Of a stretch of DNA of 64,000 nt, positions 28,348 through 64,000 are shown piece after piece. Position 1 is the stretch's first letter. Every line of letters begins with the position of its first letter. The notes under the pieces are model-generated. The model saw only the letters and a list, made by a program, of their open reading frames with translations, ran no database searches and was not told the origin of the DNA. The position numbers and the translations under genes are program-made. The stretch comes from Dendrobates tinctorius (Eukaryota), in assembly GCF_039654945.1 (NCBI RefSeq), contig NW_027361730.1, forward strand, positions 1,860,001-1,924,000, in the 5' to 3' direction.

Positions 28348-28426
28348 ACTATCAGAAGAAACCAGCACTCACTTACCCTTAAAAATCTATATATGAAGTT
28401 GTTTGGCTCTATTATCTTTTTGCCTG
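28348..28426 (+). CDS. IgV-TM-NLR gene, signal-peptide exon (ATG at 28393: MKLFGSIIFLP; open upstream to the acceptor)
   Basis: Acceptor tttccaacag|, donor G|GTAAGT, phase 1; joins the IgV exon to give the hydrophobic leader MKLFGSIIFLPVVNFASL. Confidence 0.75.
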
Positions 28427-28994
28427 GTAAGTGGGTTTGTTGTTTTTTTTACTGTTATTAAAAAACTATTTTGGATACAAAGTGTCATAATAAAACAACA
28501 GATCACTAAACAGCATAAAATCTCATTGACTTTACAAAAAAAAAAAAGCATAGTTATTCAATTAGGTAAATACCTTTCAATGTGTATATCCAATCCAGTG
28601 ACAAATGTGTGAAATTTGCTTATTTCTTATCTTGCACTGATCCTTCGTTTTAGCCAATTAACTTTCTCGCAAAATGATGTAACTTTATGTTCATCTTGCA
28701 GTAGATTTTCCACAATCCGAAGTACAGTTGCATCAGAGGGATGCTGCTGTCATTCATAGTTAGAATTCATACCCATCAGCGTGAATAAAAACGGTCTGTA
28801 AGCCCAGTGGGCAGGAGATTTGTATAAGTCCCATCCACTTTGATGTAATAGAAAAACGCCGCGTTTTCTGCTCAGTGAAATTACGCAGCGTCAAAAATTC
28901 AACGTTGGATTACAGCCTTAATGTGCATGGTGATCGCCTAGGCTCATGTATGTGTTTAGTTGAGCTTCATCCCCTTGGTTTACCTAAAAGCTTA

Positions 28995-29674
28995 GGCTAC
29001 TTTCACACATCAGGTTTTCGGCGTCAGGCGCGATCCGGCGTCGTGCCGGAATGCCGGATCCGGCAAATGTTTTGTAAAACCTGATGTGCCGGATCCGGTT
29101 TTCTGCCGGATCCGTCTTGTTCTTGACAGACAAAACCGGATCCGTCTCATCCGGTTCATCCGTTTTTCTATCCGTTTTTCGACGGATTACGCCGGATCCG
29201 GTTTTTAAAATTGACCCTTGTGGCCTTCCGAACGGGATTGGCTACTGGAAAACTATATATAGCATGTTCCTACAGCCCTTCTTTGACAGGTTGTAGTGGG
29301 CAGAGCTACTGAGCATATTCAGACCAAAAAAACCGGATCCGGCCACCGGATCCGGCTTTCGCCGGATCAGGCGCATTGCGGCGCTCATAGGCTTTCATTG
29401 TGTGAAAAAGCCGGACGCGCCGGATCCGGCGTGTCCGGCTTTTTCGCCGGAGACAAAAAACGTTACAGTAGCCGTTTTTTCCAGACACCGGATCGCGACA
29501 CATTGCCGGATCCGGCGAAAACCGGATGAAACACATGGCCATTCGGCGCGATCCGGCGCAAATGCAAGTCAATGGGGGGGAAACCGGATCCGGCATTGCA
29601 TTTCGCCGGATCCGGTTTCTGTCAAAAGCGCCGGATCGCGCCTGACGGCGAAAACCTGATGTGTGAAAGAGGCC
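28995..29674. mobile_element. Harbinger-like MITE rich in CCGGATCCGG
   Basis: GGCTACTTTCACACATCAGG...CCTGATGTGTGAAAGAGGCC, TTA TSD. Confidence 0.85.
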
Positions 29675-30016
29675 TTAGTTAACTTCATTTGTCATTGACT
29701 TCTAAAAAAAAAAACCTATATACTTCAGGCATATACAGTATTATCATTTTAGAATTGCAGTCAACTAAACTTTTCAATATATTTAAGGCAAGGATATACA
29801 AATGTGCATAGACAAATGACAAAAAGATGTTCTTTTCCCATGGTATAAGTCAAATGTAGTGTCACAGTGTGAACACCGACTTTACTGTGCTCCTATAGTA
29901 ATGTGGGGCTAAAACCTGCAGACTTGTGAATGTAGTTCAGATTATGGGCTATAATGAGGATGAGTACGAGATAAGCCATTACAAAGTTAGGGTACATACA
30001 TCAGAGAGTTAATTTA

Positions 30017-30262
30017 TTTTCCAAACTTATATAGCGCCATTAATTCCACACTGCTTTACAGACATCATCATCACTATCCCCATTGGGGCTCACAGTCTAG
30101 ATTTCCTATCAGTATGTCTTTGGAGTGTGAGAGGAAATCGGAGGACCTGAAGGAAACCCACGCAAACACGGGGAGAACATACAAACCCCAGGCAGATGTT
30201 GTCCTTGGTGGGATTTGAACCCAGGACCCCAGATCTGCAATGCTAACCACTGAGCCACTGGA
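30017..30262 (-). mobile_element. tRNA-derived SINE (V-SINE/SINE2-like) with an L2-type tail
   Basis: On the minus strand: A-box GTGGCTCAGTGGTTAGCA, B-box GGTTCAAATCC, core TCTCCCCGTGTTTGCGTGGGTTTCC, tail GTAAAGCAGTGTGGAATTAATGGCGCTATATAA. Confidence 0.85.
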
Positions 30263-30559
30263 CTGTGTTATGTTATTTTATGTTGTGTATTCCCCTGCTG
30301 TATAACTTAGTAGTGCTACTGGAGTGCTAAGTGCTACTGAAACTTAGCATTATGTTTAGTAGTTACTGTAGACATGCACTAAATTTTGTAATTACCTATG
30401 CCTAGTCTACACCATAACAGTTATTATGATTGTGATGTGTAGTACTACGAATATATGCACTAGATGTGCGACAATTAGGAGATGTGTTACTTGAGTGATG
30501 TATGTGAATAGGAGAAATGCCCCTGTCAGATAGTGCCCGACAGGATTCTACTATTTAAG

Positions 30560-31120
30560 ACTTATTGCAGCTCATCAAGGATGGCACATCAATGCGAGCT
30601 GTGGCAAGAAGAGTAGATGTGTATGTCCGCACAGTGTCCAGAGCATAGAGCAGATACCAGGAGACAGGCCAGTACACCATGTGACGCGGATGGTGCCGTA
30701 GAAGGGTAACAACCCATCAACAGGACTGTTACCTCCTCCTTTGTGCAAAGGGGAGCTGTGCCAGAGCCATGCAAAATGCTTTCCAGCAGGCCACTAACAT
30801 CCATGTGACTGCTAAAAAGTCAGAAACAGACTCCATGAGGATGGTATGAGGGCCCTACTTCCACAAGTGGGTGTTGAGCTTACAGCCCTATGCAGGGCGA
30901 TTGGCATTTGCAAGAGAACACCAAGATTGGCAGATTCGACATTGGCGCCCTGTGCTCCTCATGAATGAGAGCAAGTTCACTCTGAGCACGTGACAGAAGT
31001 GACAGGGTCTGGAGACGACATGGAGAATGTTTTGCTGCCTGCAACATCCTCCAGCATGACCGATTTTGCACTGGGTCAGTAATAGTGTGGGGAGGCATTT
31101 ATTTCGAGTGCCACACAGCC
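30560..31120 (+). mobile_element. Tc1 transposase fragment (same family as 58401-59954)
   Basis: Reverse-complement similarity to about 59050-59610; encodes degenerate MNESKFTLST.DRSDRVWRRHGE. Confidence 0.8.
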
Positions 31121-32787: not shown

Positions 32788-34241
32788 TTAAATTAATTTA
32801 AATCTCCTGGTCCAGATGAATTGCATCCTAGGGTCCTAAAATAATTAGCAGACAAAGGTGCAGAACCACTAGCCAGAATGTTTGAAAAATCCTGGAGAGC
32901 AGAAGAAGTCCTAGAAGATTGGAGAGGGGCAACTGTTGTCCCTATCGTCAAAAAAGGAAAGAAGAGGGGACCAGGAAATTACAGGCCAGTGAGCCTTACG
33001 TCTATACCAGGAAAGATTTTTTAACAAATTATTAAACAGCATGTATGCAAGTGCTTGGATAAGAATACAGTAATTAACCATAGCCAGCATGGGTTTATGG
33101 CAAGTAAGTCATGCCAAACTAATGTATTTTCCTTCTATGATGGAATCACAGACTGGGTGGATCAGAGAAATGTGGTAGATATAGTATATCTCGACTTCAG
33201 CAAAGAATTTGATAACGAATCTCATAATAGCCTTATTGAAAAAATTACTAAGAATTGGATTGACAAGGCTACGGTTAGGTGGATTCATAACTGTATTCAA
33301 AGCGTGGTAATAAATGGTTGCACATCCAACTGGAAGAGTGCTTCAACTGTGGTACCACAAGGCTCTATCCTGGCCCCAGTGTTGTTCAACATTTTTATAA
33401 ATGATATAGATAAGGGAACTGAAGGTAAACTAATCAAATTTGCAGACAATGCAAAGTGAGGAGGGATAGCTAACACTGCTGGAGAAGATAGAGAAAGGAT
33501 TCAGAAGTATCTAGATAAGCTTAAATGATGGGCAGTGACTGATAGAATGGCAAGGAGAAATGCAAAATTGTACACCTGGGCACGAAAAATGAAAATTACT
33601 GTACATCTACAGAATGGGAGGAATAGAACTAAGCAACAGCATGTGTGAAAAAGACCTGGGTATACAAATATTCTGCACAGGAGTCAACATTGTGATGCAA
33701 CAGCAAAAAAGTCAAACACGGTTCTAGGATGTATTAAGAGAAGCATACAGTCTAGATCACGTAAAGTAATTATCCCCCTCAACTACTGTGTCCAGTTCTA
33801 GGCACCACGTTTTAAAAAAGACATTGAAAAACAGGAGCACGTTCAGAGAAGAGGTACCAGGAGGGTGAGGGACTGCAAAGTATGTCCTCCGAGGAATGGT
33901 TAAAGGATCTGGAAATGCTTAGCTTGCAACAAAAAGGCTAATAGGAGACTTAATAGCTGTCTACAAATATCTGAAGAGATGTCAGTGTAGAAGAATCATC
34001 CTTATTTTCATTTGCACATGGAAAAACGAAAAGCAATGGAATGAACCTGAAAGGGAGACGATACAGATATTGGAAAAAACATTTTGACAGGGTGATCAAT
34101 GAGTGGAAAACATTGCCACAAGAGTTCTCCTTCAATGGAAGTCTTCAAACAGACATCTGTCTGGGATGGTATAGTGAATCCTTTGCTGCATTGATCAGGG
34201 GGGTTGGGCACAATGACCCTGGAGGTTGCTTTCATCTCTAA

Positions 34242-34841: not shown

Positions 34842-35192
34842 TTGTCAACTTTGCGTCCTTAGATGTTGAAGGACAACTACATGAAGATGTTCTCCTTCCA
34901 TGTATTGTCATCTACAAGGATGAATTTGACTACAATTTGCTTGTAGTTCACTGGCAGCGACCAGAGAATGATGTTGTGGTCCATTCCTTCTATTATGACT
35001 CAAGCCAATCTGAATATCAATCAGATCAATATCGAGGTAGAACACAGATGTTTTATGATTTATTGCCCTCTGGTAATCTGTCATTGCTTCTCAGGAACCT
35101 CTCTGAATCAGATGCTGGGAGTTACACTTGTCAGAGTGTACTGCAAGAGACATCAGGGATCACCATTCAAGGTGTGAACCTTACACTAAAAG
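34842..35192 (+). CDS. IgV-TM-NLR gene, V-set Ig exon (B7/butyrophilin-like)
   Basis: cttttgccag| acceptor, G|GTAATA donor, phase 1-1. VLLPC, VHWQR, YRGRT and GNLSLLLRNLSESDAGSYTC are canonical B7-family IgV motifs; three N-glycosylation sequons. Confidence 0.93.
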
Positions 35193-39036: not shown

Positions 39037-41180
39037 ATGCCATTGGAGGTAAAAGTACTTCGCTTCCCCAATCTCGACCAAAACGTCCTTTCAACAGAAG
39101 TGGTTTTCGACCATTCAGGCCCTTTCGTCCCTTCTCTGCCACGGAGAGAGCCACTCAACAGGATCGGCCGCCCGCCACCAGGGAGCGGGATCAGAGGAAA
39201 CCTTCCTACAAACCCACTCCTCGCTGGAGATCTAGAGGACAATATTCCAGATCTGCAGGAGCCAATTCCGGCAGATTTTCGTCTAAGTGACGGGTCACCC
39301 CCACCTGGAATTTCTTCCAGGGTGGGAGGCAGACTTTCCTTTTTCGCGGATGCTTGGCTGTCCGTTGTCGACGACGCTTGGGTCAGAGAACTCGTCGCAT
39401 CCGGATACAAGATCGAATTTGCTTCACTCCCGAACAGACGGTTTTTCCAGTCTCGGCCTCCGCGACAGCGGGCCCAGCTTCCGGGTTTTCTGCAGGTCAT
39501 TTCCTCCCTTCTTTCCGCCGGAGTCATTGTTCCCGTTCCCTCAGACGAACGGTTTTCCGGGTTCTACTCCAATCTCTTTGTAGTCCCGAAGAAAGACGGC
39601 TCTCTTCGTCCTATTCTGGACCTCAAATTGCTCAATCGCCACGTGAAGATTCTTCACTTCAGGATGGAGTCTCTTCGGTCGGTGATTGCTTCCATGGAGC
39701 CCGGGGAATTTCTCTGCTCTGTGGACATTCGGGATGCCTATCTGCACATTCCAATTTGTGTGCAACATCAGAAGTATCTTCGATTTGCGTTTCAGGGAGA
39801 CCACTTTCAGTTCACAGCTCTCCCTTTCGGCCTAGCTTCAGCGCCCCGTGTTTTCACGAAGGTGATGGCGACCGTCATGGCCATCCTTCGCTCTAGAGGG
39901 ATCCTCATCATCCCTTATCTGGACGATCTTTTGATCAAGGGTTCGTCTCGCCAGGACTGTCTCCGGAGCCTTCAGATAACCCTGGACACTCTCAGCCGCC
40001 TAGGTTGGCTGGTCAACAAGGAGAAGTCCATTCTGATCCCCACCCAGCGTCTGACCTTTCTGGGTATGGAATTCGACACGAAGCTAGCCCGTGTTTTTCT
40101 TCCAAGGGAAAAATGTACAACTCTGTCCAAGGGCATCAGAACTCTCAAGAGGCCTGTTCCTATTCCCATTCGGTTCTGCATGAAGGTCCTGGGGAAGATG
40201 GTGGCCTCCATGGAAGCAGTACCCTTTGCGCAGTTTCATCTTCGCCCCCTCCAGCTGTCTCTGCTTTCAGCCTGGGACAAGACCACGATGTCCTTGGACC
40301 GTCCTATTCGGCTTCCTCTCAGAGTGAGGCAGTCTCTCACTTGGTGGTTACGGCCAGCGTCAGTTCTCCAAGGGAGGTCCTTCCTTCCGCCTCAGTGGCA
40401 AGTCATCACCACCGATGCGAGCCTTCTAGGATGGGGAGCCGTGTTCCATCAGAAAGCGGCCCAAGGCCGCTGGAAGCCACAGGAGTCTCTCCTCCCAATC
40501 AATCTTTTGGAGATCAGAGCAATTTTCCTGGCCCTTCTTCATTGGCAGCCCCTCCTCTCCGGCAAGCCGGTCCGTATTCAGTCGGACAACGCCACGGCCG
40601 TGGCGTACATAAACCATCAGGGGGGCACGCGCAGCAAACAAGTAATGTCAGAAGTGGCCAAGATATTCCGCTGGGCAGAACGTTACGTTCCGACAATCTC
40701 CGCCGTCCATATTCCAGGGGTGGAAAATTGGGCAGCCGACTTTCTGAGTCGCCAGGGCCTAGCGTCCGGCGAATGGTCCCTGCACCCCGCAGTTTTCTCT
40801 CAGATATGCGACCGTTGGGGCACCCCGGATGTCGATCTCATGGCATCTCGGATGAACCACAAGGTGCCACAGTTCGTAGCCAGGTCCAGGGACCCTCTAG
40901 CGACGCACTGGTGACTCCGTGGTCCCAGTTTCAACTTCCGTATCTGTTCCCGCCTCTGGCATTGATCCCTCGAGTGGTCAAATAGATAAAATCGGAAGGC
41001 GTACCAGTGATTCTAGTCGCTCCAGATTGGCCAAGACGGCCTTGGTACGCGGAACTGGTCAACATGCTCGCGGACGTTCCCTGGAGGCTTCCAGACCGTC
41101 CAGATCTTCTCTCGCAAGGCCCCCTTTACCACGAGAATTCTCAGTCTCTGAGTTTGACGGCATGGCCGTTGAGACCGCAA
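39037..41180 (+). pseudogene. DIRS RT-RNase H-MT ORF, frameshifted near 40900 with a stop at 40983
   Basis: ORF 39037-40914 continues in another frame as DALVTPWSQFQLPYLFPP...VVK*IKSEGVPVILVAPDWPRRPW. Confidence 0.85.
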
Positions 41181-44904: not shown

Positions 44905-45059
44905 TAACAGTTTAACAGCCGTGGTCAGAGCTCTGCTCCACCCTTATCTGTTAAAGGCAGATGATTGCTAGTTAAATCATCCATCATCTGCCAGGAAAGA
45001 TGCGGACTCGGCGTGCCAGCCCGCTTCAAAGTCAGGGACATGACACAAGATGTTCAACC

Positions 45060-45697: not shown

Positions 45698-45742
<45 letters not shown>

Positions 45743-49976: not shown

Positions 49977-50191
49977 TAAGTCAGTTAAGTTCTCGCTATG
50001 GTTTTGGCATTTGAGAAAATAGCAAAGTGGTAGCATTCTACAGGCAAATGTTAATGATAACAAGAAGTATATGGTAAGTTGGGAAATTAATAATTTTTTT
50101 TGTGTGAAGAACAGTAATACAGTATTCCATTGTTACACAATATACGGTAGATCATTGTTTGTAACAAGATGTACTTGTCTTTTTCTTGCAG

Positions 50192-50224
50192 AAAATCCGG
50201 CCCTCATTGATGCAAAGTCGCAAG
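50192..50224 (+). CDS. IgV-TM-NLR gene, 33-nt cytoplasmic linker exon, copy 1 (ENPALIDAKSQ)
   Basis: Strong acceptor ttgtctttttcttgcag|, donor AAG|GTATCT, symmetric phase 1-1. Confidence 0.7.
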
Positions 50225-50650
50225 GTATCTAACTGTATTTTGCAGATATTTTAATTTTTGAACCATATTTAACCCCTTCCCGACATCTGCCATACATGTA
50301 TGGCGCAGGTTGGGAGCGGGTGTATGGAGTGGGCTCACAGGTCGATCTCGCACCATAAGCGGGATATAATAGCTGCATATCACAGCTCTGAGTCTAACAG
50401 TAGCAGGATGGAGCCTAGCACCCACGACTGTTAACCTGATAAATGCTGCTATCAGTCTCTGACAGCAGCATTAAAAACTCACTCTTATCAAAGTTTATTT
50501 TAGAAAATACATATATTTGTTGTAAAATAACAATTATGCAGCATTATCTCTTAGAACTCTGCATTTTTCTAGTCCTCTTGAATTCCTCCTAGAAATATAT
50601 GAATAAATTGAAGGAGTTGCCACTACTCTGACAACCCCCTCTCACGGTAA

Positions 50651-51046
50651 AGGTACTGTCACACTTAGCGATGTACCAGCGATCCTGACCAGCGATATGA
50701 CGCGGTCAGGATCGCTGGTACATCGCTAAGTGGTCGCTAGTGAGCTGCCACACAGGCAGATCTCACCAGCGACATCGCTGGGGACGGGGATCGCTACTTA
50801 CATGTCACAACAGGCGATCCTGCGTCCTCCCGCCCGGCTCCACGCGTCGCTCGTCCTCACAGCAGGAAGCGCCGCAGGAAGCAGACGACGAGAAACAGTC
50901 CTGAACGTTCTCGCGCGATCAGCGATAACCAGCGGGGGAGCCGGTCGTAGGTAAGTATCACACATAGCGATATCGCTAGCAATATCGCTATAACGTCACT
51001 AGTTATAGCGATATTGCTAGCGATATCTCTTAGTGTGACATGCCCT
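50651..51046. mobile_element. Harbinger-like MITE, AGCGAT-rich family (duplicate at 54903-55298)
   Basis: TAA TSD; homologous to the copies at 14219 and 34242. Confidence 0.8.
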
Positions 51047-54000
51047 TAACAGTTCACCAAGCAACTGATCTACTCTGCTCGACTTTTTGATAATTTGTGC
51101 ATTATTTGCTCCATATCTTTCAGGTAAAAAAAAATCCTGGTTATGCAACACTTAGGGAAATAGTTGAACTGATTAGAATCCTTCAGCTGTCTAATCTCTT
51201 TTCTTCAACCTTCATCTCAGGTTTAGTGTTCTGCTGGGCCCTGAACTTTTATAATAGGTGGTTATTGTGTCATTAGGGTTTGTGGTTACATTGATGGAAA
51301 TAAGCCAAATGAAGAATGAAAATAATGTAGTGCCAGAGCACCATAGCAGAATATATGCTTTTCAAAGCTATCATGCAAACTGTCTCTTCAGACACGAAGA
51401 GGACTTGAACTCTAGTGAAACCTATAGGAAGTAGCAATTCTAAAAGTCAATAACGACTCTCCGTCCTAAGCCGAATGTATGGACATGTAGGTCATAAGAA
51501 GCTAAATAAAATATTATCTGTGATCAGATGCCTTATTCAAGTGAGATCAACGTTTTCTTATATGTACTGTAAATGAAATGTTAAAGCAGGCTTGCACAAT
51601 ATATGACCCCCCATAGGATGTTGTGCTGCCTGCAGACAACCAGGAGACTCCAGTTCTCATTTTCCCATGTTCAACTGTATTTGCATCCTTCAAGAATTGT
51701 AAAATGGCACAGTAGCAAAGGAGCAGTGTGGGGGATAATTTGGAGAGGGGCAGTTTGGCAGGGTATATTATGGAGATGGGCAGAGACTGGGGTATATTAT
51801 GGAGAGGAGTGGTGTGGGGATATATTATGAAGAGGGGCAGTGTGGGGGGATATTATACAGGGGGCAGTGTAGTGAGATATTATAGAGAGGAGCAGTGTGG
51901 TGGGGATGTTATTTTTCAGGAAACAGAGTGAGGAGCAATAGACTTGCATTGCCAATTTTGATCTTACACTCAATTCAAAATCAGACATGTTACCAATTGG
52001 ACATGTTCACAGCTCCATAGAATAACATGGATACAAGTATTATCAATCAAAACCATGGATAGCACTTGTCCAACTTAAATGGTCATGTGCACGAGCACTT
52101 AAGGACATAAGTGGCAAGTTTTTTTCTCTCCGTTGCCATGAGTGTTCCAAATTTTATTTTAATTACAAATCTGTCATATAATTCCAGGGATATGGGTCTT
52201 TTTACTTAGTGCTAATTTTTATGGTTTTTAGCCCCTTACTGCCATTGGACGCAATAGTACATCTAATGGCAGTACCCCTGCTTTGATGAGGGCTCCGGCA
52301 GTAAGCCGGCATCAAAGCCGGGACATGTCAGCTGTTTTCAACAGCTGACATATGCCCGCAATAGGTGCAGGTGGAATCGCAATCCACCCGCGCCTATTAA
52401 CTAGTTAAATCCCACTGTCAAATGCGGGATTTAACCTGCGCTTCCGGTCGCCGGGCCAGAAATACGCGCATCACCAACCTCCATCACATGATCTGGGGTC
52501 AGCGATGCGTTGCCATAACAACCTGAGGTCTCCTAGAGACCTCTATGGTTGTTGATGAGGCATTGCTATGAGCGCCACCTGGTGGTCGGCCCTCAGAGCT
52601 ATGCTGTAATTCTGCTACATATAGTCGAACTGCTCATCGCCTATATGTAACAGAGCCGATCAAGTTGTGGATTCTTCTAACCTCCCAAGGAGGCTATTGA
52701 AGCATGGCAAAATTATTTAAAAAATGTTTTAAAAAAATATGAAAAAAATAAAAAAATATAAAAGTTTAAATCACCCCACTTTCGCCCCATTCAAAATAAA
52801 ACAATTAAAAAAAATCACACATACACATGTTAGGTATCGCCGCATTCAGAATCGCCCGATCTATCAATAAGAAAAAGGATGAACCTGATCGCTAAATGGC
52901 GTAGCGGGAAAAAAAATCGAAATGCCAGAATTACTTTTTTTGGTCACCGTGACATTGCATTAAAATACAATAATGGGTGTTCAAAAGATCGTATCTGCAC
53001 ATAAATGGTATCCTTAAAAATGTCAGCTCGGCGCGCAAAAAATAAGCCCTCACCCAACCACAGATCACATAAAATGGAGACGGGTATCGGAAAATGGCGC
53101 AATTTTTTAGCAAATTTGGAATTTTTTTCACCATTTAGATAAAAAAGAACCTAGACATGTTTGGTGACTATGAACTTGTAATGACCTGGCAAATCATAAT
53201 GGCGTGTCAGTTTTAGCATTTAGTAAACCTAGCAAAAAAAGCCAAACAAAAACAAGTGTGGGATTGCACTTTTTGCAATTTCACCGCACTTGGAATTTTT
53301 TTCCCGTTTTTGAGTACACTACATACTAAAACCAATGATGTCGTTCAAAAGTACAACTCGTCCCGCAAAAAATAAGCCCTCACATGGCCATATTGACGGA
53401 AAAATAAAAAAGTTATGGCTCTTGGAACTAGGGGAGCGAAAAGCAAAAGCCGAAAAAAGCTCTGTTCATTAAGGGGTTAAAAAGTGGGTGGTGCTCACTA
53501 CATACTAAGCACTAAATAAAGAGTGACATATCTCTGGAATCTTAGGGTGTATTTATAAAAAAGCTTAAAAAAATGGAATACTAAGGGGAGCAGCGGGAAT
53601 AAAATAGGAGCAAAAACTGGGCACTGTTGACCTGATGACAGGTCCTCTAAGAGGATGGACCTCGGTGCATTTCCCTGCTGTCAGCTGGCCAGGACCAATG
53701 TGCTTTGATTTCAAATGGGAATAACATGTGCAGCTGTAATTCTTGCACTGTCTCATACAAGGGACATTTTGACTAAGGCCGGTTTCACATTTGCAATTAA
53801 GACCGCAGCGTCGGCCTGCGCACGGCCACCGCTAAGCCCTGCCCCCTGTCGCGCCTCCGCCGGTAGCTCCGCCTCCGGGTGCATGACACTGCATGCGTCA
53901 TGCGTCCCCTATCTTTATCACTGAGGACGCAGACCGTGCGCAGTATGCGTTTGGCGGCGCCTGCGTCCTTTTGACGGCGCGCCGAGCTCCACCAAATTGC

Positions 54001-54440
54001 AACAGGTTGCGTTTGGCGCTGGTTGGCGCACCGTCAAAAGGACGCAGGCGCCGCCAAAACGCATACTGTGCACGGCCTGCGTCCTTAGTGATAGGGGATG
54101 CATGACGCATGCAGCGTCATGCGCCCGGAGGCGAGCTACCGGAGGAGGCGCGGCAGGGGGCGGGGCTTAGCGGCGGCCGTGCGCAGGCCGACGCTGCGGC
54201 CTTAAACGCAAATGTGAAACCGGCCTAAGTCAGTTAAGTTCTCGCTATGGTTTTGGCATTTGAGAAAATAGCAAAGTGGTAGCATTCTACAGGCAAATGT
54301 TAATGATAACAAGAAGTATATGGTAAGTTGGGAAATTAATAATTTTTTTTGTGTGAAGAACAGTAATACAGTATTCCATTGTTACACAATATACGGTAGA
54401 TCATTGTTTGTAACAAGATGTACTTGTCTTTTTCTTGCAG

Positions 54441-54473
54441 AAAATACGGCCCTCATTGATGCAAAGTCGCAAG
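54441..54473 (+). CDS. IgV-TM-NLR gene, 33-nt linker exon, copy 2 (ENTALIDAKSQ)
   Basis: Same splice sites as copy 1; CCG to ACG (Pro to Thr) difference. Confidence 0.65.
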
Positions 54474-56444
54474 GTATCTAACTGTATTTTGCAGATATTT
54501 TAATTTTTGAACCATATTTAACCCCTTCCCGACATCTGCCATACATGTATGGCGCAGGTTGGGAGCGGGTGTATGGAGTGGGCTCACAGGTCGATCTCGC
54601 ACCATAAGCGGGATATAATAGCTGCATATCACAGCTCTGAGTCTAACAGTAGCAGGATGGAGCCTAGCTCCACCCACGACTGTTAACCTGATAAATGCTG
54701 CTATCAGTCTCTGACAGCAGCATTAAAAACTCACTCTTATCAAAGTTTATTTTAGAAAATACATATATTTGTTGTAAAATAACAATTATGCAGCATTATC
54801 TCTTAGAACTCTGCATTTTTCTAGTCCTCTTGAATTCCTCCTAGAAATATATGAATAAATTGAAGGAGTTGCCACTACTCTGACAACCCCCTCTCACGGT
54901 AAAGGTACTGTCACACTTAGCGATGTACCAGCGATCCCGACCAGCGATATGACGCGGTCAGGATCGCTGGTACATCGCTAAGTGGTCGCTAGTGAGCTGC
55001 CACACAGGCAGATCTCACCAGCGACATCGCTGGGGACGGGGATCGCTACTTACATGTCACAACAGGCGATCCTGCGTCCTCCCGCCCGGCTCCACGCGTC
55101 GCTCGTCCTCACAGCAGGAAGCGCCGCAGGAAGCAGACGACGAGAAACAGTCCTGAACGTTCTCGCGCGATCAGCGATAACCAGCGGGGGAGCCGGTCGT
55201 AGGTAAGTATCACACATAGCGATATCGCTAGCAATATCGCTATAACGTCACTAGTTATAGCGATATTGCTAGCGATATCTCTTAGTGTGACATGCCCTTA
55301 ACAGTTCACCAAGCAACTGATCTACTCTGCTCGACTTTTTGATAATTTGTGCATTATTTGCTCCATATCTTTCAGGTAAAAAAAAATCCTGGTTATGCAA
55401 CACTTAGGGAAATAGTTGAACTGATTAGAATCCTTCAGCTGTCTAATCTCTTTTCTTCAACCTTCATCTCAGGTTTAGTGTTCTGCTGGGCCCTGAACTT
55501 TTATAATAGGTGGTTATTGTGTCATTAGGGTTTGTGGTTACATTGATGGAAATAAGCCAAATGAAGAATGAAAATAATGTAGTGCCAGAGCACCATAGCA
55601 GAATATATGCTTTTCAAAGCTATCATGCAAACTGTCTCTTCAGACACGAAGAGGACTTGAACTCTAGTGAAACCTATAGGAAGTAGCAATTCTAAAAGTC
55701 AATAACGACTCTCCGTCCTAAGCCGAATGTATGGACATGTAGGTCATAAGAAGCTAAATAAAATATTATCTGTGATCAGATGCCTTATTCAAGTGAGATC
55801 AACGTTTTCTTATATGTACTGTAAATGAAATGTTAAAGCAGGCTTGCACAATATATGACCCCCCATAGGATGTTGTGCTGCCTGCAGACAACCAGGAGAC
55901 TCCAGTTCTCATTTTCCCATGTTCAACTGTATTTGCATCCTTCAAGAATTGTAAAATGGCACAGTAGCAAAGGAGCAGTGTGGGGGATAATTTGGAGAGG
56001 GGCAGTTTGGCAGGGTATATTATGGAGATGGGCAGAGACTGGGGTATATTATGGAGAGGAGTGGTGTGGGGATATATTATGAAGAGGGGCAGTGTGGGGG
56101 GATATTATACAGGGGGCAGTGTAGTGAGATATTATAGAGAGGAGCAGTGTGGTGGGGATGTTATTTTTCAGGAAACAGAGTGAGGAGCAATTATTTATTC
56201 AGTGGCACAGCATGGTATATATTTTTTATTCATGGGGCATTATAATGATACTTTTTATTTTTAAGTACTGCAGAAGGCCAGAGAAGAGGGAAGTCTGGAA
56301 AGATGAGCTCTAGGCGTAAAATCTCATAATTGTGTCTGTACTATGACAAAAGGATTGGAGACAAGAGATGGGAACAACTTCAATCAGAGAAGATGTCAAG
56401 TATAAGGTGCATGGATACAAATGTTTTTGTGATACTGGCTGATG

Positions 56445-56447
<3 letters not shown>

Positions 56448-56510
<63 letters not shown>
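56448..56510. repeat. (TA)n microsatellite
   Basis: About 31 TA units. Confidence 0.95.
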
Positions 56511-56513
<3 letters not shown>

Positions 56514-57095
56514 CTGACCTGAAATTGCAAATTATCATAGTACTAAACTTGGTGATGTACTCCTGTACTTACAGTGTTTCTGGTGATGTATTCATGTACT
56601 GACAGTGGTTTTGGGAATATATTCATGTACTGTTGGTGGTCCTAGTGATGGATTCATGTACCGATGGTGGTTCTGGTGATTGTATTTGTGTCCTGTTGGT
56701 GGTTCTAGCACTGCATCCATGTACTGACGGTGGTTGTGATCATGTAGCAATCCATAATGTGCTTCATGCTAAAACTGAAAAATCATCAAAACTTAATTTT
56801 GAGATTAAGAGGAGGATTTGGTTGAGTTTCCACTTAGTTTCTGCTCCAAAAACTCGATGTATTTTTGGGTGTGTTCAAACTGAGCATTTTGGAGCAGAAA
56901 CTCTCCAAATCCTTCTAAAATACTCAAAAATTTGTTCTAATGATGTATTAGTTCTGATGATGTATTAATGTACTGACGGTGGTTATGGTGATATATTCAT
57001 GTAAACACCCCTTTAGATTATTTTGCAGCCTTTTGGATTGGTTCAATATGAAAATGTGGGCCTTGGACCAAAAAATGTTGTTCACCCCTGTGTTA

Positions 57096-57473
57096 GGGTG
57101 TGTGCACATGCTGCGGAATCTGCTGCGGATTCATCCGCGCGGATTTTGCAAAATCCGCAGAAAAATCCGCAGGTCAAAAGACCTGCGGTTTATCTGCAGA
57201 TTAGCTTGGGGTTTTGCCCTGCGGTTTATCATCTCCACAATGGAGGAGATGGTAAACCGCTGCGGAATCTGCAGAAAGAATTGACATGCAATTCTTTCTG
57301 CGGATTTGAAACCGCAGCAAAATCCGCGCGGAAAATTCCGCAACGTTTGCACAGCGGTTTTTAATTCCCATAGGGAATAATGGTACTATACACCGCAGCT
57401 AATTCTGCTGCGGATCCGCAGGGCCAAATCCGCTGCGAATCTGCAGCAGAATCCACTTCGTGTGCACATACCC
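57096..57473. mobile_element. Harbinger-like MITE
   Basis: GGGTGTGTGCACA ... TGTGCACATACCC, TTA TSD. Confidence 0.8.
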
Positions 57474-58124
57474 TTAAAGACAATGGGCAAAACACATCTC
57501 CCTGAGAATCTTCAGAACTTAATTTTTTTTAAAAAGGGGAAGTTACCAGTGTGAGACATGTAACTAACACAGAACAGTAAAACTGAGCTTTGTCTTCTTA
57601 CAAACACATTTACTGCAGCACTGCTGTGTTACGACAATATTGTAACCCTGCCTGGCTGTGAGATGGAAGCTGAAGCACTGAGATCTCTCCAGTGAGATCA
57701 GTAAGAGTAGTAAGCAGCCATAACAAATCATACAGGTAACTCCCCCTTTTATTTAAAATAAGCTCTGGAGTTAGATTCTCATGCAGATCAGTGTCCGACC
57801 CATAACCTGGAACAGCTCATTTACATACATAAAAAAACTGGATTCCTCTAGAATAAGACATCAGACCACAAATATCAAGGTATCATTTTATTAACTTCCT
57901 ATCACCTACATGACGATATAGATGGCTTAGGAGGGTTGATCCTCCTAACAGATTCCCTTTAAATACAGCCTTGTTATCTATGATTGAGACAGAGCAGAAC
58001 TGGCTATGGCATGCAGATATCTTTTGAGCACATTATGGTAAATGTATTATTTACTTTAAGTTCAAGCATTCATGCAAAAATATTATATGTAATGGACCCA
58101 TAAGTGTGTTCCAGAATTACTCTA

Positions 58125-58397
58125 GATGTAAGATATTTGCCCACACCTGTCCATGAAATAGCCTTGGAGTCAATTGTCCAATTACTTTTGGTCCCTTTAA
58201 AAGCAGGGTGGCACATGTTAAGGAGCTGAAACTCCTAAACCCTTCATCCAATTTTAATGTGGATACCCTCAAATGAAAGCTGAAAGTCTGAACTACAACT
58301 GCATCTGAATTGTTTTGTTTAAAATTCATTGTGGTAATGTCTAGAACCAAAATTAGAAAAATGTTGTCTCTGTCCAAATATATATGGACCTAACTGT
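58125..58397. mobile_element. Terminal fragment of a second Tc1-like family
   Basis: Ends ...GTCCAAATATATATGGACCTAACTG-TA, a CAGT-type Tc1 TIR. Confidence 0.65.
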
Positions 58398-58400
58398 ATA

Positions 58401-59954
58401 CACTGCTCCAAAAAATAAGGGGAACACCACATCCTAGATATCATTGAATGAAATATTTCAGTTTTAAATATTTATTCATTACATAGTGGAATGTGTTGAG
58501 AACAATAAAACTTAAACATGATCAATGTAAATCAAAATATCCCATGTAGGTCTGGATTTGGAATGATACTCAAAATCAAGTGCAAAATCATTTTACAGGC
58601 TGATCATTGGAAATGCCTCAAGACAAGGAAATGATGCTCAGTAGTGTGTGTAGCCTCCACGTGCCTGTATGACCTCCCTACAACGCCTGTGCATTCCCCT
58701 GATGAGGTAGCGGATATTCTTCTGTGGGATCTCCTTCCAAACCTTGATTAAAGCATCAGTCAACTCGTGGCCAGTCTGTGGTGCAACGTGGAGGATGGAA
58801 TGAGACATGATGTCCCACATATGCTCGATTGAATTCAGGCCTGGTGAATGGGCAGGCAAGTCCATAGCATCAATGGCTTTATCATGCAGGAACTGCTGAC
58901 ACACTTCAGCCACATGAAGCCTAGCATTGTCATACATCAGAAGGAACCCAGGGCCCACTGCACCTGCACATGGTCTCACAATGGGTCTGAGGATCTCATC
59001 ATAGTACCTTACGGCAGTGAGGGTACCTCTGGCTAGCACGTGGGGGGCTGTGCAGCACTCCAAAGAAATGCCTCCCCTCACCATTACTGACCCATTGCCA
59101 AACCGGTCATGCTGAAGGATGATGCAGGCAGCAGAACGTTTTCCACAGCGTCTCCAAACTCTGTCATGTCTGTCACATGTGCTCAGTGTGAACCTGCTCT
59201 CATCCATGAATGGCACAGGGGCACAGGACGCCAATGTTGAATTTGCCAATCTTGATATTCCCTGACAAATGGCAATAGCCTGCACAGTGTTGGGCTGTAA
59301 GCACAACACCCACTTGTGGATTCGGGCCCTCGTGCCACCTTCATGGAGTCTGTTTGTGACAGTTGGAGCAGAATCATGAACGTTGGTGGCCTGCTGGAGG
59401 TCATTTTGCAGGGCTCTGGCACCGCTCCTCCTGTTCCTCCTTGCACAAAGGGGAAGGTAGCAGTCCTGCTGCTGGATTGTTGCCCTCCTATGGCCTCCTC
59501 CACATCTCCTGGTTTACTGGCCTGTCTCCTGGTATCTGCTCCATGCTCTGGACACTATGCTGACAGACACAGCTACCCTTGTTGCCACAGCTCACATTGA
59601 TGTACCATCCTCGATGAGCTGCACTACCTGAGCAACTTCTGTGGGTTGTGGACACTGCCTCATGCTACAGTACCTCTAGGAGAGAGAGCAATGACAAAAC
59701 CAACAGCCAAAAAGGGAAAAGAAAAGAGAAATGGTCTGTAGTACCTGAAGAACCACTCCTTTATAGGGGTTGTCTTGCTAATTGCTTATCATTTCTACCT
59801 GTCATCTGTTCCATTTGCACAACAGCAGGAGAAATCGATTCACAATCAGTGTTGCTTCATAACTGGACATGCTGATTTCACAGAAGTGTGATTGACTTGG
59901 AGTTAATTTGTGTTGTTTAGTTGTTTAAGTGTTCCCTTTATTTTTTGAGCAGTG
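58401..59954 (-). mobile_element. Tc1/mariner transposon, full-length and decayed
   Basis: TA-CACTGCTC(C/A)AAAAAATAA(G/A)GGGAACAC TIRs at both ends; ORF 58638-59309 has FMDES, MYDNA and LNSIEHMW (DD34E remnants), frameshifted upstream. Confidence 0.92.
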
Positions 59955-60123
59955 TACATGATCAAAGTGAAGGGGTGGGAAAGAATAAAGTATTTGATGT
60001 TGTCTAGCGAGTTGATGATATTCATAATGTGACTATTGAGCAATCTCTCCACTTATTGTACTGTGTATATGTGTGCCTCATTTTAAACATGATCTTCTAA
60101 ACCTTTTCTTTGTCATTTTATAG

Positions 60124-61669
60124 AATCTATAATACAACATTATAAAAAAAGTGTGGCCTACATTATGCAACATAAAGATTATTCTCTATCACAAAGACAT
60201 TTACTTGTGAAAAAATGTAGTTTTCTTGAATCTTCTGGAAAAATGAAAGCATATACAGAGGACAAGTCTGAGACTATAAATGCAGAAGAACTTTTTACAC
60301 CGGAAAAGCAGCAGCTTATATCCAGAAGAATGTGTTTACTGGGGGATGCCGGGAGTGGAAAAAGCTATTTCTGTAAATGGCTTCAAACTGAATGGATACA
60401 AGAAAAACTTACAATGTATAAATGTATTGTATACCTACCCAGCAAAAAATTCAAGAATAACATGAGCCTGGAGGCTGTATGTGATGAAACATATTCTAAC
60501 CTTTCTTCAGTTCTCAGCATGGATAATATCCTGCTCATTTTTGATGGACTTGATGACCTTGTGTGTGAAAACAGAAACTCAGACTCAACTCAGAAGAGTG
60601 AAATAACTAATTGCTCTTTAAATATGTACCCCTTGTTGGAAAAAATCATGAAAAAAATACTTGTGCCTGACATGGATGTCTTAATTGTATGTCGCAATGA
60701 CTCTTTGATTGACTTACAGAAGGAATGCAACTCAGCTTTTATTCTTCTAGACTTTACTGAGCAAGAGACTGAGAATGTCTATAATACAATTACTGTAAAA
60801 GAGCAAAAATCAGACAAGAGATGTAAAAAAATATCAGATATCACACACATGCCTGCTTTTGTTGTAATGATGAGTCATTTCAGCAATAACCACCATCTGG
60901 AAACAATCAGAGATTCTAGTCCATATACGATTCTTACTGATATTTTGTTGGAGTGGACTACAAATGTCATAGGAGAAAGAATAAAGCAGAATATTTTTAT
61001 AAATATGGCAAGTCAATCATATGTAAACCTTATTAAAGGTGAGCCAAACAGCACAGAGACTATAGAGTCCTGGGACACATTTCTGAAATTTTATAACTGC
61101 CAAGAGCAAAGTAAGTACCAGCGCAATATTCTGAGAGACATGTTGGCAGCTGCACACTGCGTATGGGAAATACACCGTACAGGAGGCTTAAAAGAGTGCC
61201 TGAATTTCTGGGTGTTTGGAAGCAATATACATAGGAATACTGAGTTGCTAAAATCTGTTGCAGATGAGCACAATGCAAAATATTATCACTTCATAAGATT
61301 CTTCATGAGACTTCTCAATTATCCAGATTGTGAGAGTCTGTGTAATAATATGCCCATGAAGAACAGTTGTATGGAAGACTTACTTTCAGACTGGTTCAAG
61401 GAGAACATTTGCAAATGTAGACCTTCTGAAAAGCTGAAACTCCTCCATTGCATTTTTGAACTTCATGATGAGATGATGACAATAGAAGTTCTGTCAAACT
61501 TGAAAAAGTTAGAGCTCTTTAACACCCCTCTGAACTTTAAAGATATCCAGGCCTTGGATTACTGCTTCAAAGACATTGAATTGGAAGAACTGGACTTGAG
61601 GCTTTGTGCTCTTGAGGACAAAAGTGTTAAACGACTCAGAAGTGTGATTAAGAACACCAAAAATGTTAT
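60124..61669 (+). CDS. IgV-TM-NLR gene, NACHT exon (NBD-HD1-WHD-HD2 and first LRR)
   Basis: tgtcattttatag| phase-1 acceptor in frame with ORF 60153; Walker A GDAGSGKS, Walker B LLIFDGLDDL, sensor-1-like LIVCR, HD2 motifs FIRFFMRLL and LLHCIFEL, LRR LEELDLRLCAL; donor AT|GTAAGC, phase 2. Confidence 0.93.
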
Positions 61670-62750
61670 GTAAGCTGATCTGTTTGTTTGTTCCAATACA
61701 GTTGTAGAGTAATACCAGTAAAAGATACCAATGCAATGCACAGATCATTTTATCTTTATGTGCCATAGATTGGTTGGCATTACGGACAGGGTCACTATTG
61801 GGGTACGTGAACACATTGAGTAATTACAGCTGATTTTTCTGCACAAGAAAAACGTGGCAGGATAAATGCTGCACAGAATACTTGTTTGTTGATACATTTT
61901 TACATATGTTTTTAATGTGTTTTAACTTGCGTTTAACACTACATAAAAGCTAAAAGAATCAACCTGCTGCAGATTTGAAAAAACTTTTTGTTGGTTCAAA
62001 TCCGCAAGGAAAAAAATAAGCAACATGTTTGTGTCATTCACTTTGCTGGTACTGTAAAGTGCAGCATTGTTTACCCTTCAAAAATGCAGGTAAAAAAAGT
62101 AGCAAAAACACAGCCCACGCAAACTATGGTCAAACACTCACCAACTCCAACAATTGTTGTACGGGAGTTATAAGGTTTCCATTCTAAAGTAAAAGTGACC
62201 TTTTAATTGGGAAATGAGGTTCAAACCTTTTATCTGGCGTAGTGCATTTTCTTTAACATTAATTTAAATGCATGTTCAAAAAGGGATAGTATTCACATAA
62301 TACTCACTTTTGGGTCTTGACCATTTGTCCTTATGGAGACCAGATAGTTCTAATGATAGTCCTGACAACTGATTGCGGCACTGTTGCCATGTATTGAAAC
62401 ATACCCAGGATAAAATAGCATACCTGTAGGAATAATTTGAATCTCAGCGATAAAATATAGGCTCATCCAGTTTTGTATTGTCATAAACAAACTGGATAAA
62501 ATAAAAATTGAGATTTATAGAAACTGGAAATGTATTTTACATCAGGCTTCATAGAATGGCACAGCTCTTGAGAACATCAAATATGTGATTCCAAAAGCAT
62601 ACAAGTTTGGGAATATAGATACAATTCGTTGGCCATTGATACCTGTACATAAATACCCATACATAAACACTCGCTGTACATAAATAGCTATATTACATAA
62701 AATATTTATTTCTGTGGTCATCATATTTGGATTGATTTTATTTGTTTCAG

Positions 62751-62837
62751 GCTGTCTTCTAACTACTTGACTGAAGAAGCTGGAAAGGTACTAGGAGAAA
62801 TTCTGGTAGAGCCTGGCTGTATTATTGAAAAACTTTC
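62751..62837 (+). CDS. IgV-TM-NLR gene, 87-nt LRR exon
   Basis: tttgtttcag| ... |GTGAGT, phase 2-2; (M)LSSNYLTEEAGKVLGEILVEPGCIIEKL(S) is a ribonuclease-inhibitor-type LRR. Confidence 0.9.
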
Positions 62838-63239
62838 GTGAGTATAGAAATCTGCATATTTTCTACATGTTCATATTTAATCAAAGAACAAACAGATGAA
62901 CGGCAAACTAGGGCACACAAATCACCACATTAACAGACGGAGCTATTTATCTGAAGTATTGCGGTATATGTTTCAGTCAAAAAACGGAGGTGCTTGCATA
63001 AAAAAACATGAATACTTCAATGTGAAATGGAAGTATAGCTGAAAAACTGTGCATCTTTATTTCACATCAATTCCATCAACAGGTATGTGGACATACAGGA
63101 CGTTAGAGGAATGCTAGGGGAGGGAGGTGCACAGGATGCACGGTTCTTCAGCTATATTGGTGAGTGCTGCATATTTTTTCTTCTTCGATTTCACATTGAA
63201 ATGTTCATATTTAAATCAATATATTTTTGGTCCAGGTAT

Positions 63240-63730
63240 ATATTCACAAAATTTTGTGGACCATAAGACGCACCTTTGAGGTGCAAAATAGGAAAAACCT
63301 TTTTTAAATAAAATGGTGGTGGTCTTATAGTCCTTTTTAACGTTAGCTTACCTTGGGATGGCTACAGAGGAGTGGGGCCAAAGGAGGCAAGGTTGCTGCT
63401 TCCGGAGGCCGGCCGGCAGGAGCAAGGCGATGCTGCGTTGTCTGGGATCTCAGATGGTGTCGGCGCTGATGAGCGGAGTCCATTTTCCAAATGATATTGC
63501 TGCGGTGGGCTTTGGTACGATGACCACCGGAAGCGGTGCATGCACAGTTTGAAATCTCAGGAGACGAGAGCTCCTGCTGCTGCCGGCCTCCTGAAGCAAT
63601 GACCCTGTCTCCTGTGACCTTGCTCCATTGCAGCCGCCCCTCAGTAAACTCACTTCGGATTATAAGATGCACCCCCTTTTTCATTTCAAATTTGAGGAAA
63701 AAAATGCATCTTATAATCTGAAAAATACGC
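63240..63730. mobile_element. Pogo/Tigger-like non-autonomous element
   Basis: GGACCATAAGACGCACC ... TGCATCTTATAATCTGAAAAATACG terminal motifs. Confidence 0.6.
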
Positions 63731-63953
63731 TATTACAAAGAATAAAAGAACATCAGCGACCCTATTGAAAGAAATACTCAGGGTTGATGCTTCTTTGTAG
63801 GTGTGCATCTCAGCCTGACAAAAAGTTGTACAATTTAAGCATCTGTCCATGTTCCATAAGCTGGACACAGAAACACAATTTGCTCCTTAGACTATATACC
63901 CAATAAAAAAAATTCAACCATTGCATACTATAAGTAAAATTTTATTTTTGCAG

Positions 63954-64000
63954 GGTGGGAACCAATCAGTTGGGTGATCATGGCGCTCAAGAACTTTGGA
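63954..64000 (+). CDS. IgV-TM-NLR gene, next LRR exon (runs off the window)
   Basis: ttttatttttgcag| phase-2 acceptor; (S)VGTNQLGDHGAQELW matches LxxNxLGDxGAxxL. Confidence 0.88.

Follow-up and report, generated by a model that had tools for sequence, protein, structure and literature searches.

A Dendrobates tinctorius gene that very probably encodes a membrane-anchored NLR with a B7-H3-like IgV ectodomain and belongs to an ancient gnathostome family

Do the exons for a B7-like immunoglobulin domain and those for a NACHT-LRR protein, which follow each other on one strand of a 64,000-nucleotide stretch of Dendrobates tinctorius DNA (contig NW_027361730.1, positions 1,860,001 to 1,924,000; hereafter the window), belong to a single gene, and if so, what kind of protein does it make? 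Our analyses suggested that one expressed gene very probably encodes a membrane-anchored NLR, with a signal sequence, a B7-H3-like IgV outside the cell or in the lumen, a transmembrane (TM) helix, a linker, NACHT-HD1-WHD-HD2, a short LRR and a helical bundle, and that it belongs to an old, unnamed gnathostome family of IgV-TM-NACHT-LRR architecture. The initial annotation had proposed such a single type-I-like gene; the RefSeq model, an RNA splice, intron-less cDNAs and conservation in about 25 species all supported it.

The gene extends from about 10.1 kb in the window to its end at 64 kb and then about 16 kb further, and the CDS of the whole gene spans 60,961 bp. Its features are as follows, in window positions.

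10075 to 10209, forward strand: putative non-coding or first exon ending ATG/GT, read from sequence, its 5' border placed from transcript length only
10119 to 10160, forward strand: two adjacent ISRE/IRF-E-like motifs (GGAAAAGTGAAACT, AGAAATGAAACT), read from sequence
19216 to 19290, forward strand: exon in which RefSeq places the start codon (ATG 19237; MDSQSASERLVTTKLASK), AG acceptor and GT donor, ending in phase 0
28348 to 28426, forward strand: exon for the signal sequence or signal anchor, covering its basic n-region and hydrophobic core (TIRRNQHSLTLKNLYMKLFGSIIFLP), ending in phase 1
34842 to 35192, forward strand: IgV (Pfam V-set) exon of B7-H3/B7-H4 type, phase 1-1
46053 to 46199, forward strand: stalk and transmembrane helix (ITNTVAVCILDLCLFCFLI), then KLNRKRNNDE, phase 1-1
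50192 to 50224, forward strand: 33-nt exon a, coding for ENPALIDAKSQ in the cytoplasmic linker, within duplication copy 1 (48052-51939)
54441 to 54473, forward strand: 33-nt exon b (ENTALIDAKSQ), cytoplasmic linker, in copy 2 (52301-56191), spliced to the NACHT exon
56266 to 56404, forward strand: candidate alternative terminal exon, weakly evidenced; splice 54473>56266 gives VLQKAREEGSLER and a stop after 13 codons
60124 to 61669, forward strand: large exon for a linker/FISNA-like region, NACHT NBD, HD1, WHD, HD2 and the first LRRs, phase 1 in, phase 2 out
62751 to 62837, forward strand: LRR exon, ribonuclease-inhibitor type, phase 2-2
63954 to 64000, forward strand: first part of a further LRR exon that runs past the end of the window, in isoform X1 and skipped in X2

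AG acceptors and GT donors were found at all eight exon intervals first proposed, and the claim that phases match at every junction was borne out on the sequence (1, 1, 1, 1, (1), 2, 2). The joined frame contained no stop in any version, whether neither 33-nt exon was included (737 codons), one (748) or both (759, in agreement with the roughly 760 codons originally estimated). These two exons sit in a 3.9-kb tandem duplication whose copies are 99.8% identical. RefSeq independently models the same fused protein under the label "NLRP1 homolog" (XP_073435308-10, 932/876 aa): isoform X1 (932 aa) includes the exon starting at 63954 and X2 (876 aa) lacks it, and the rest of the LRRs and the C-terminal helical bundle are encoded past the window end.

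The D. tinctorius sequencing runs, whose library type is unrecorded, were taken as RNA on account of their spliced joints. The joint 54473>60124 (GT..AG), a junction that the initial annotation had singled out for checking, was present in contigs of four of four runs at depths of 14, 32, 6 and 25. A joint going back by 33 nt in runs X15, X16 and X29 corresponds to two tandem 33-nt units in RNA; together with the RefSeq protein, it settles that D. tinctorius uses both small exons, one after the other, where either or both had been suggested. All sampled words of the NACHT exon were contained in runs X15-X18, and depth was near zero over unique intron stretches. On the 5' side of the NACHT acceptor, contigs continued for 853-890 nt, as expected from the Ig/TM 5' part (697 nt of CDS plus UTR). 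That IgV and NACHT are linked on one D. tinctorius molecule is deduced from how long the contigs are, together with the RefSeq model and the cDNAs of orthologues. In related frogs, one continuous 917-aa V-set+NACHT+HD2+LRR ORF was carried by each of two Logan contigs that lack introns, L001 (3266 nt) and L002 (3639 nt), and the cDNA protein P0131 aligned end to end with the frog protein P0009 at 65% identity.

Translation most likely starts at ATG 19237 rather than at ATG 28393, which had been chosen initially and is probably wrong. In tblastn, P0001/P0009 matched 19237-19290 at 100% identity; this stretch encodes the RefSeq N-terminus MDSQ and is joined to 28348 in phase 0. The same N-terminus is kept in the cDNA orthologues and in Engystomops, Mantella and Pyxicephalus, while Ile occupies the site of the Met at 28393 in Ranitomeya, Engystomops and P0131. 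Read through 21 nt of the following exon, the ATG of the putative first exon at 10075-10209 is in frame with MDSQ (MTFFSILI-MDSQ). Before the NACHT acceptor, the contig of X15 carries 853 nt, compared with 697 nt of CDS and the further 21 nt, and comparably extended N-termini are seen in Bufo, Pyxicephalus and the cDNA P0133. Judged by motif, the ISRE/IRF-E-like pair might make the 5' end of the gene responsive to interferon; ISRE-like matches across the whole window numbered 7 versus 6.7 expected, which is not above chance.

The ectodomain is a V-set (Pfam, 1.1e-11 at 34844-35191) with a canonical Cys-Trp-Cys and DxGxYxC core and three N-glycosylation sequons. As a single sequence it matched the PDB entries of CD276 (2e-17) and VTCN1 (4e-10), and the family profile scored CD276 (2.5e-45), VTCN1 (1.3e-24), MOG (2e-21) and BTN3A1 (9e-19). 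Residues C65, W82, D135, Y139 and C141 were invariant in the family IgV. In the AF2 model (pLDDT 77), an Ig sandwich and a TM helix are followed by a disordered linker and then the NLR body, with the beta-sandwich at residues 51-161 (pLDDT 80-90) and the TM within a helix at 171-208. Only about 20 stalk residues separate IgV and TM; a membrane-proximal IgC domain was not found in the frog protein, and among the members scanned C2-set_3 occurred only in Alosa P0080. The TM segment has a Kyte-Doolittle value of 2.29 with four K/R downstream, and nearly all family members show an N-terminal hydrophobic segment and one strong TM followed by a K/R cluster. Type I topology is suggested by hydropathy and the positive-inside rule. 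Signal cleavage is uncertain because neobatrachian members carry an extension of about 33 aa, basic in the frog protein, ahead of the hydrophobic core, and this long extension may leave the signal uncleaved, giving a two-TM hairpin. In other amphibians, IgV-skipping isoforms retain the signal peptide and the TM.

A flexible cytoplasmic linker of about 90 aa, including the two 11-aa exon repeats, leads from the TM to the NACHT. On 60126-61667 Pfam scored NACHT (5e-15) and NLRC4_HD2 (8e-10), so that V-set, NACHT and NLRC4_HD2 were all scored on the joined protein, in line with its initial domain reading. An intact Walker A (GDAGSGKS) lies at residue 306 and Walker B (LLIFDGLDD) at 368, and G311, K312 and D373 were invariant in 16 sequences. 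Searched as a single sequence with phmmer, the frog NACHT exon matched no PDB chain, which indicates that this module is divergent. The family profile matched NLRP3 (2.6e-82, the alignment beginning in the FISNA region), NOD2 (1e-71) and NLRP1 (2.4e-58), and NLRP3 and NOD2 are the nearest relatives of solved structure; their alignments span HD1-WHD-HD2, and NOD2_WH was also scored in the catshark member. Foldseek matched NOD2 (1.5e-21), NLRP3 and NLRX1, the best Swiss-Prot model being NLRX1 (1e-26, post-LRR helices included). Residues 700-932 of P0009 matched ribonuclease inhibitor (2.6e-22) and the NOD2 LRR (1.4e-14), other members matched LRR_6, and the AF2 model shows alternating strand-helix units at 694-860. 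Pfam detected no CARD, PYD, FIIND, BIR, B30.2 or FISNA in the frog protein, and neither PYD nor CARD in nine relatives, just as the missing PYD/CARD exon had implied. An NLRP1 identity was rejected, since P0009 and the nine relatives have no PYD, FIIND or CARD and NLRP3 outscores NLRP1 in the NACHT; on these sequence grounds, the label "NLRP1 homolog" in RefSeq is unwarranted.

Some 25 species, ranging from sharks to frogs, share the same combination of signal sequence, B7-H3-like IgV, TM followed by K/R, NACHT, HD2 and LRR. Homologues occur in many frogs, salamanders, one caecilian, gars, sharks and one chimaera, with a fragment in alligator; no member was detected among birds or mammals. V-set+NACHT+HD2 was scored in all ten members examined (frogs, newt, caecilian, gar, catshark, shad). 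The NACHT modules of the family form one clade (core SH-aLRT 100) whose topology roughly follows the species tree, the frog gene falling in an anuran paralogue lineage. The full ORF has stayed intact and conserved over about 450 My, the most conserved parts being the IgV (45%) and the LRR (48%), with the NBD lower (35%). In addition, separate clupeid fusions (Alosa P0080) carry an IgC (C2-set_3), and some percomorph teleost models have a signal peptide, Ig and TM before FISNA-NACHT.

Two other readings were weighed. It is very improbable, and largely refuted, that a B7/BTN-like gene and a neighbouring NLR gene were merged by prediction or read-through with phases compatible by chance. Predictors do merge neighbours, and the Latimeria model P0035 resembles such a case; Ig genes often have phase 1-1 exons, and phase compatibility alone is therefore weak evidence. 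However, an in-frame splice enters the NACHT exon from exons without a start codon of their own, the continuous ORFs lie on intron-less cDNA, different annotation pipelines and many taxa give the same architecture, and no other gene was called within 10 kb of the locus. Somewhat less remote, but still improbable, is a real but minor fused mRNA, with a short Ig-TM protein and/or other truncations as the main products and the full TM-NLR of little function in D. tinctorius. In one contig of run X29, 54473 joins the exon at 56266 at a depth of 8.8, versus 6.1 for the main joint there, and an Ig-TM-only isoform is therefore possible on this slight evidence. Yet the alternative joint occurs in one of four runs and the NACHT joint in all four, and both the long conservation of the full ORF and the full-length cDNAs of related frogs speak against a negligible product.

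For the single fused protein, the NOD-LRR module under the membrane would act as the usual nucleotide-driven oligomerisation switch. As TM and IgV fill the effector-domain position of other NLRs, oligomerisation would cluster TM helices and B7-like ectodomains, and a cytosolic trigger would thus cause a B7-like ligand to be displayed multivalently to a conserved counter-receptor of the host. We tentatively favour this inside-out signalling over outside-in signalling, the direction in either case being pure inference. In the outside-in alternative, which is possible though hardly probable, the IgV would bind a microbial or host ligand outside the cell or in endosomes, and clustering would drive NACHT oligomerisation and a cytoskeletal/phagocytic or NF-kB response; the anatomy would be identical, and the only characterised Ig-TM-NACHT protein, sea-cucumber AjNLRC4, reportedly acts in this way (PMC8699970; PMC13133943). 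On the other hand, no cytosolic effector domain that could relay such a signal was recognised in the frog protein, its family keeps a conserved LRR that is absent from AjNLRC4, and the IgV is highly conserved, not diversified. For inside-out signalling we count that same lack of a cytosolic effector domain, together with the conservation of IgV and LRR above the NBD, which fits conserved partners and not an arms race. In its widest form, the inside-out proposal is doubtful: a membrane-spanning NLR ancestral to jawed vertebrates, in which active NACHT-LRR would cluster a B7-H3-like IgV read by a conserved lymphocyte/myeloid counter-receptor, undetected in birds and mammals and re-invented several times in fishes. 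If true, one polypeptide would link innate cytosolic sensing inside-out to B7-type co-signalling.

The frog protein shares the NACHT-HD1-WHD-HD2-LRR body and Walker A/B with NLRP3, NOD2 and NLRX1, but has no PYD, CARD, FIIND or mitochondrial presequence; a signal, an extracellular IgV and a TM stand in the N-terminal effector position. It is thus not of the typical soluble cytosolic type with a death-fold or BIR N-terminus, neither of which Pfam found. With B7 proteins and butyrophilins it has in common an N-terminal B7-signature V-set with the canonical disulfide, and with BTN genes the short in-phase cytoplasmic exons; hydropathy suggests a type I layout. It differs from both in lacking an IgC and in having a whole NLR as its tail instead of a B30.2 domain or a short tail. 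The B30.2 tail of BTN3A1 is a cytosolic sensor domain governing an Ig ectodomain, and offers a precedent for such control. Teleost NLR-C/NLR-B30.2 proteins are likewise lineage-specific NLRs that combine a NOD module with a domain common to butyrophilins, but their NACHT belongs to a different clade and the frog protein has no Pfam FISNA or B30.2; to our knowledge, they are cytosolic in all described cases.

The view that no characterised vertebrate protein has this architecture holds insofar as no vertebrate paper describing IgV-TM-NACHT-LRR proteins was found in the literature searched; the proteins themselves are already public, under misleading automatic names such as "NLRP1 homolog", and an echinoderm analogue has been characterised. 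In sea cucumber, AjNLRC4 and AjNLR-new unite an Ig ectodomain, membrane spans and NACHT on one chain and were localised to the membrane experimentally (PMC8699970; PMC13133943). AjNLRC4, the only characterised Ig-TM-NACHT analogue found, has two Ig domains, two TMs, no LRR and a reported role in actin-driven phagocytosis (PMC8699970); by published domain layout, it and the vertebrate family are probably independent fusions.

Sequence checks and protein mapping established that the exon and domain anatomy of the Ig-TM-NLR gene is real. At the proposed bases, every exon interval of the initial annotation is flanked by an AG acceptor and GT donor. Counted from ATG 28393, the joined frame is stop-free whether it includes one of the 33-nt exons (748 codons), both (759) or neither (737), and its junction phases are 1,1,1,1,(1),2,2 as predicted. 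The NACHT-exon protein, used as a query, matched a Dendrobates tinctorius RefSeq protein at 100% identity, XP_073435310.1 (P0001, 876 aa), of which isoform X1 is XP_073435308/9 (P0009, 932 aa). V-set, NACHT and HD2 domains are already present in both models, which carry the label "NACHT, LRR and PYD domains-containing protein 1 homolog". Mapped on the window, the two proteins recovered all of these exons, both 33-nt exons included, and revealed one more. The principal features are as follows.

10119-10160, two ISRE/IRF-E-like motifs, adjoining the exon-like stretch that ends at 10209
to 10209, exon-like stretch ending ...ATG/GTGAGT, its ATG sharing the frame of the MDSQ start (19237)
19237-19290, additional coding exon found by protein mapping, encoding MDSQSASERLVTTKLASK
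34842-35192, IgV exon
46053-46199, stalk and TM exon
48052-51939 and 52301-56191, tandem duplication of 3.9 kb, copies 99.8% identical
50192-50224 and 54441-54473, the two 33-nt exons
56266-56404, alternative acceptor exon, spliced from the donor at 54473 in a single X29 contig
60124-61669, NACHT exon

Since the upstream coding exon joins 28348 in phase 0, ATG 28393 is internal and probably does not serve as the start that had been assigned to it; this position is occupied by Ile in Ranitomeya, Engystomops and the cDNA orthologue P0131, whereas the MDSQ N-terminus is conserved in the same comparison. The putative exon ending at 10209 would extend the N-terminus by MTFFSILI, and comparable extensions are found in Bufo, Pyxicephalus and one frog cDNA. 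The CDS spans 60,961 bp and thus ends about 16 kb past the window, and no other genes were called within 10 kb of the locus.

Joining of the two halves was proven at the transcript level in related frogs. The Logan contigs L001 (SRR5149468, 3266 nt) and L002 (SRR12112769, 3639 nt) each contain one continuous ORF of 917 aa with V-set, NACHT, HD2 and LRR domains, and P0131 aligns with P0009 at 65% identity from residue 1 to the C-terminus, the alignment passing over all exon junctions of the frog gene; a D. tinctorius gene of about 61 kb fits a 3.3-kb contig only as spliced mRNA. For the region 54401-60400, contigs were aligned from three D. tinctorius runs (X15, X16 and X29, library type not on record) and from X5, an RNA run of a close relative. 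The splice 54473>60124 (GT..AG), which had been singled out for checking, was present in contigs of all four runs at depths of 14, 32, 6 and 25. Contig depth was near 0 in unique intron stretches, so the contigs are RNA-derived. The X15 contig (3190 nt) and the X5 contig (2723 nt) hold 853 and 890 nt upstream of the NACHT acceptor, against 697 nt of CDS in the fused model; the surplus is plausibly 5' UTR. The D. tinctorius lengths are consistent with a fused IgV-NACHT transcript and do not amount to proof. Transcripts came from D. tinctorius, one close relative and two related frogs, and an exact protein look-up for a D. tinctorius transcript returned the genome record only. In addition, one contig of X29 alone joined 54473 to 56266, where the frame stops after 13 more codons, hinting at a possible Ig-TM-only isoform.

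All three D. tinctorius runs also contained a joint that goes back 33 nt, corresponding to two tandem 33-nt units. By sequence comparison, the second 33-nt exon is a product of the 3.9-kb tandem duplication; D. tinctorius RNA includes both copies in spliced form (ENPALIDAKSQ-ENTALIDAKSQ), and X5 and P0131 carry a single unit. On our own reading of ORF translations, the introns hold large transposon ORFs at 5273-6760 (-), 22470-26666 (+), 39037-42211 (+), 58638-59309 (-) and 33055-33459 (+), resembling piggyBac-like transposase, Ty3/gypsy-like protease-RT-integrase, DIRS-like RT/RNase H with tyrosine recombinase, Tc1/mariner transposase and LINE RT fragments. RNA-contig depth was very high over some intron stretches (54801-55400, 57000-58400). 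As for the 5' motifs, the ISRE count in the window was at chance level and the pair at 10119-10160 was not statistically distinguished, so interferon control of the gene remains a guess.

Pfam annotations assigned the 351-nt exon to a V-set Ig domain (1.1e-11) and the 1546-nt exon to NACHT (5e-15) and NLRC4_HD2 (8e-10). The closest solved structure to the frog IgV is CD276/B7-H3 (2e-17), followed by VTCN1/B7-H4 (4e-10). The frog NACHT has a Walker A motif, GDAGSGKS, and a Walker B motif, LLIFDGLDD, whose key residues are invariant in a 16-sequence alignment. No CARD, PYD, FIIND, BIR or B30.2 was detected by Pfam in the frog protein or the scanned relatives, and the RefSeq name "NLRP1 homolog" is therefore misleading. 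An AlphaFold2 model of P0009, built on the family alignment (mean pLDDT 77), predicted the following order.

51-161, Ig sandwich
171-208, long helix, the TM
203-227, disordered stretch, the 11-aa repeats
after the disordered stretch, NBD/HD/WHD body
to about 860, LRR units
867-931, helical bundle

The frog NACHT exon alone found no match in the PDB by single-sequence phmmer. NLRP3 was the top match of the family profile (2.6e-82, with an alignment running from the FISNA region onward) and NOD2 the second (1e-71), and Foldseek matched NOD2 at 1.5e-21. Among Swiss-Prot models NLRX1 ranked best (1e-26) and covered the C-terminal helices of the frog model, at TM-scores so low that the structural likeness is only a lead; P0041, from the sister group, was rejected as an NLRX1 orthologue. 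In the linker before the NBD (60126-60400), X5 and the window differ at 12 bases in 11 codons (9 nonsynonymous, 2 synonymous), which suggests either that the juxtamembrane linker evolves fast or that the X5 sequence is a paralogue.

Homologues were sought by exhaustive HMMER with the NACHT exon, look-ups, a 16-sequence profile search and a search with an alligator fragment. These searches yielded homologues carrying the N-terminal IgV in anurans (dendrobatids, Mantella, Pyxicephalus, Hyperolius, Bufo, Leptodactylus, Engystomops, Pelobates, Pelodytes, Discoglossus, Bombina and Ascaphus), salamanders (Pleurodeles, Lissotriton and Ambystoma), the caecilian Rhinatrema, gars (Lepisosteus and Atractosteus) and chondrichthyans (Scyliorhinus and Callorhinchus), along with an Alligator fragment. 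In Chelydra and Latimeria the models held the NACHT part; members in birds, mammals and pipid frogs were not found at the sensitivity used. All 10 members scanned with Pfam had V-set, NACHT and HD2. By hydropathy, nearly all members combine a signal-like stretch at the N-terminus with one strong TM (KD 2.1-3.4), after which come 4-7 K/R, and the predicted IgV-skipping isoforms of Rhinatrema, Pleurodeles and Ambystoma retain signal and TM. The likely topology places the IgV outside and the NOD-LRR inside. In Latimeria, P0035 comprises the end of a NACHT module and then a C-terminal IgV and TM; gene prediction seems to have fused two tandem family members here, and the coelacanth would then possess a tandem array.

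In the NOD-module tree the core family formed one clade (SH-aLRT 100), with chondrichthyans basal, then gars, coelacanth and tetrapods; the latter split into two paralogue lineages, the Dendrobates gene lying in the anuran one. Clupeid IgV-IgC-TM-NLRs and percomorph Ig-TM-FISNA-NLR models fell in other NLR clades. Monophyly of the core family with the clupeid Ig-bearing NLRs was rejected (AU p = 3e-6, for a group chosen after seeing the tree). In P0080, P0082 and P0126 (Alosa, Coilia) and in P0138-P0142 (percomorphs), the NACHT is preceded by a signal peptide, Ig domain(s) and TM, the Ig part of the clupeid proteins being a BTN-like IgV-IgC pair. If the gene models are right, these look like independent fusions, and the design seems to have more than one origin; such recurrence would point to repeated selection for it.

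In reviews and textbooks, vertebrate NLRs figure as cytosolic, soluble sensors and B7/BTN proteins as ligands on the cell surface; the Ig-TM-NLR family unites both types of module on one chain. The family is old, from chondrichthyans to frogs and crocodilians, with intact ORFs, and offers a natural system for studying NLR oligomerisation under membrane tethering. It also bears on which molecule the B7-H3-like V domain ancestrally paired with, the mammalian B7-H3 receptor being, to our knowledge, still unknown, and prompts one to ask why the searches yielded no member from birds or mammals. The sequences are already public under wrong automatic names, dozens of RefSeq entries called NLRP1 homolog, NLRC3-like or NOD1-like being Ig-TM-NLRs. 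The suspected novelty held in full-text literature searches, in which no account of a transmembrane or Ig-bearing vertebrate NLR came up; papers on zebrafish NLR-B30.2, the whale-shark genome, sturgeon NLRC3-like, PRR domain architectures and fish NLRs (a 2025 review) were irrelevant to this architecture. Among invertebrates, the 2021 paper on AjNLRC4, a sea-cucumber Ig-TM-NACHT receptor, stated that proteins with both Ig and NACHT were previously unreported (PMC8699970), and a second echinoderm case was described in 2026 (PMC13133943). The design is not categorically new, since its two modules were known before and an invertebrate analogue exists.

Mechanistically, the NOD module may act as an oligomerisation switch beneath the membrane, with TM and IgV occupying the effector-domain slot of other NLRs in a protein that would have no cytosolic effector domain. 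Across 14 core members, IgV and LRR are the most conserved parts (mean pairwise identity 45% and 48%, against 35% for NBD, 31% for HD1-WHD-HD2 and 20% for the linker), which argues for conserved partners at both ends of the protein rather than a pathogen arms race. On account of the occupied effector slot and this conservation, we favour, at a little short of even confidence, inside-out signalling, in which cytosolic activation would cluster a B7-like ligand for a host counter-receptor; BTN3A1 offers an analogy. The converse, outside-in signalling, is conceivable though somewhat doubtful, and has in its favour that it is the mode reported for sea-cucumber AjNLRC4 (PMC8699970).
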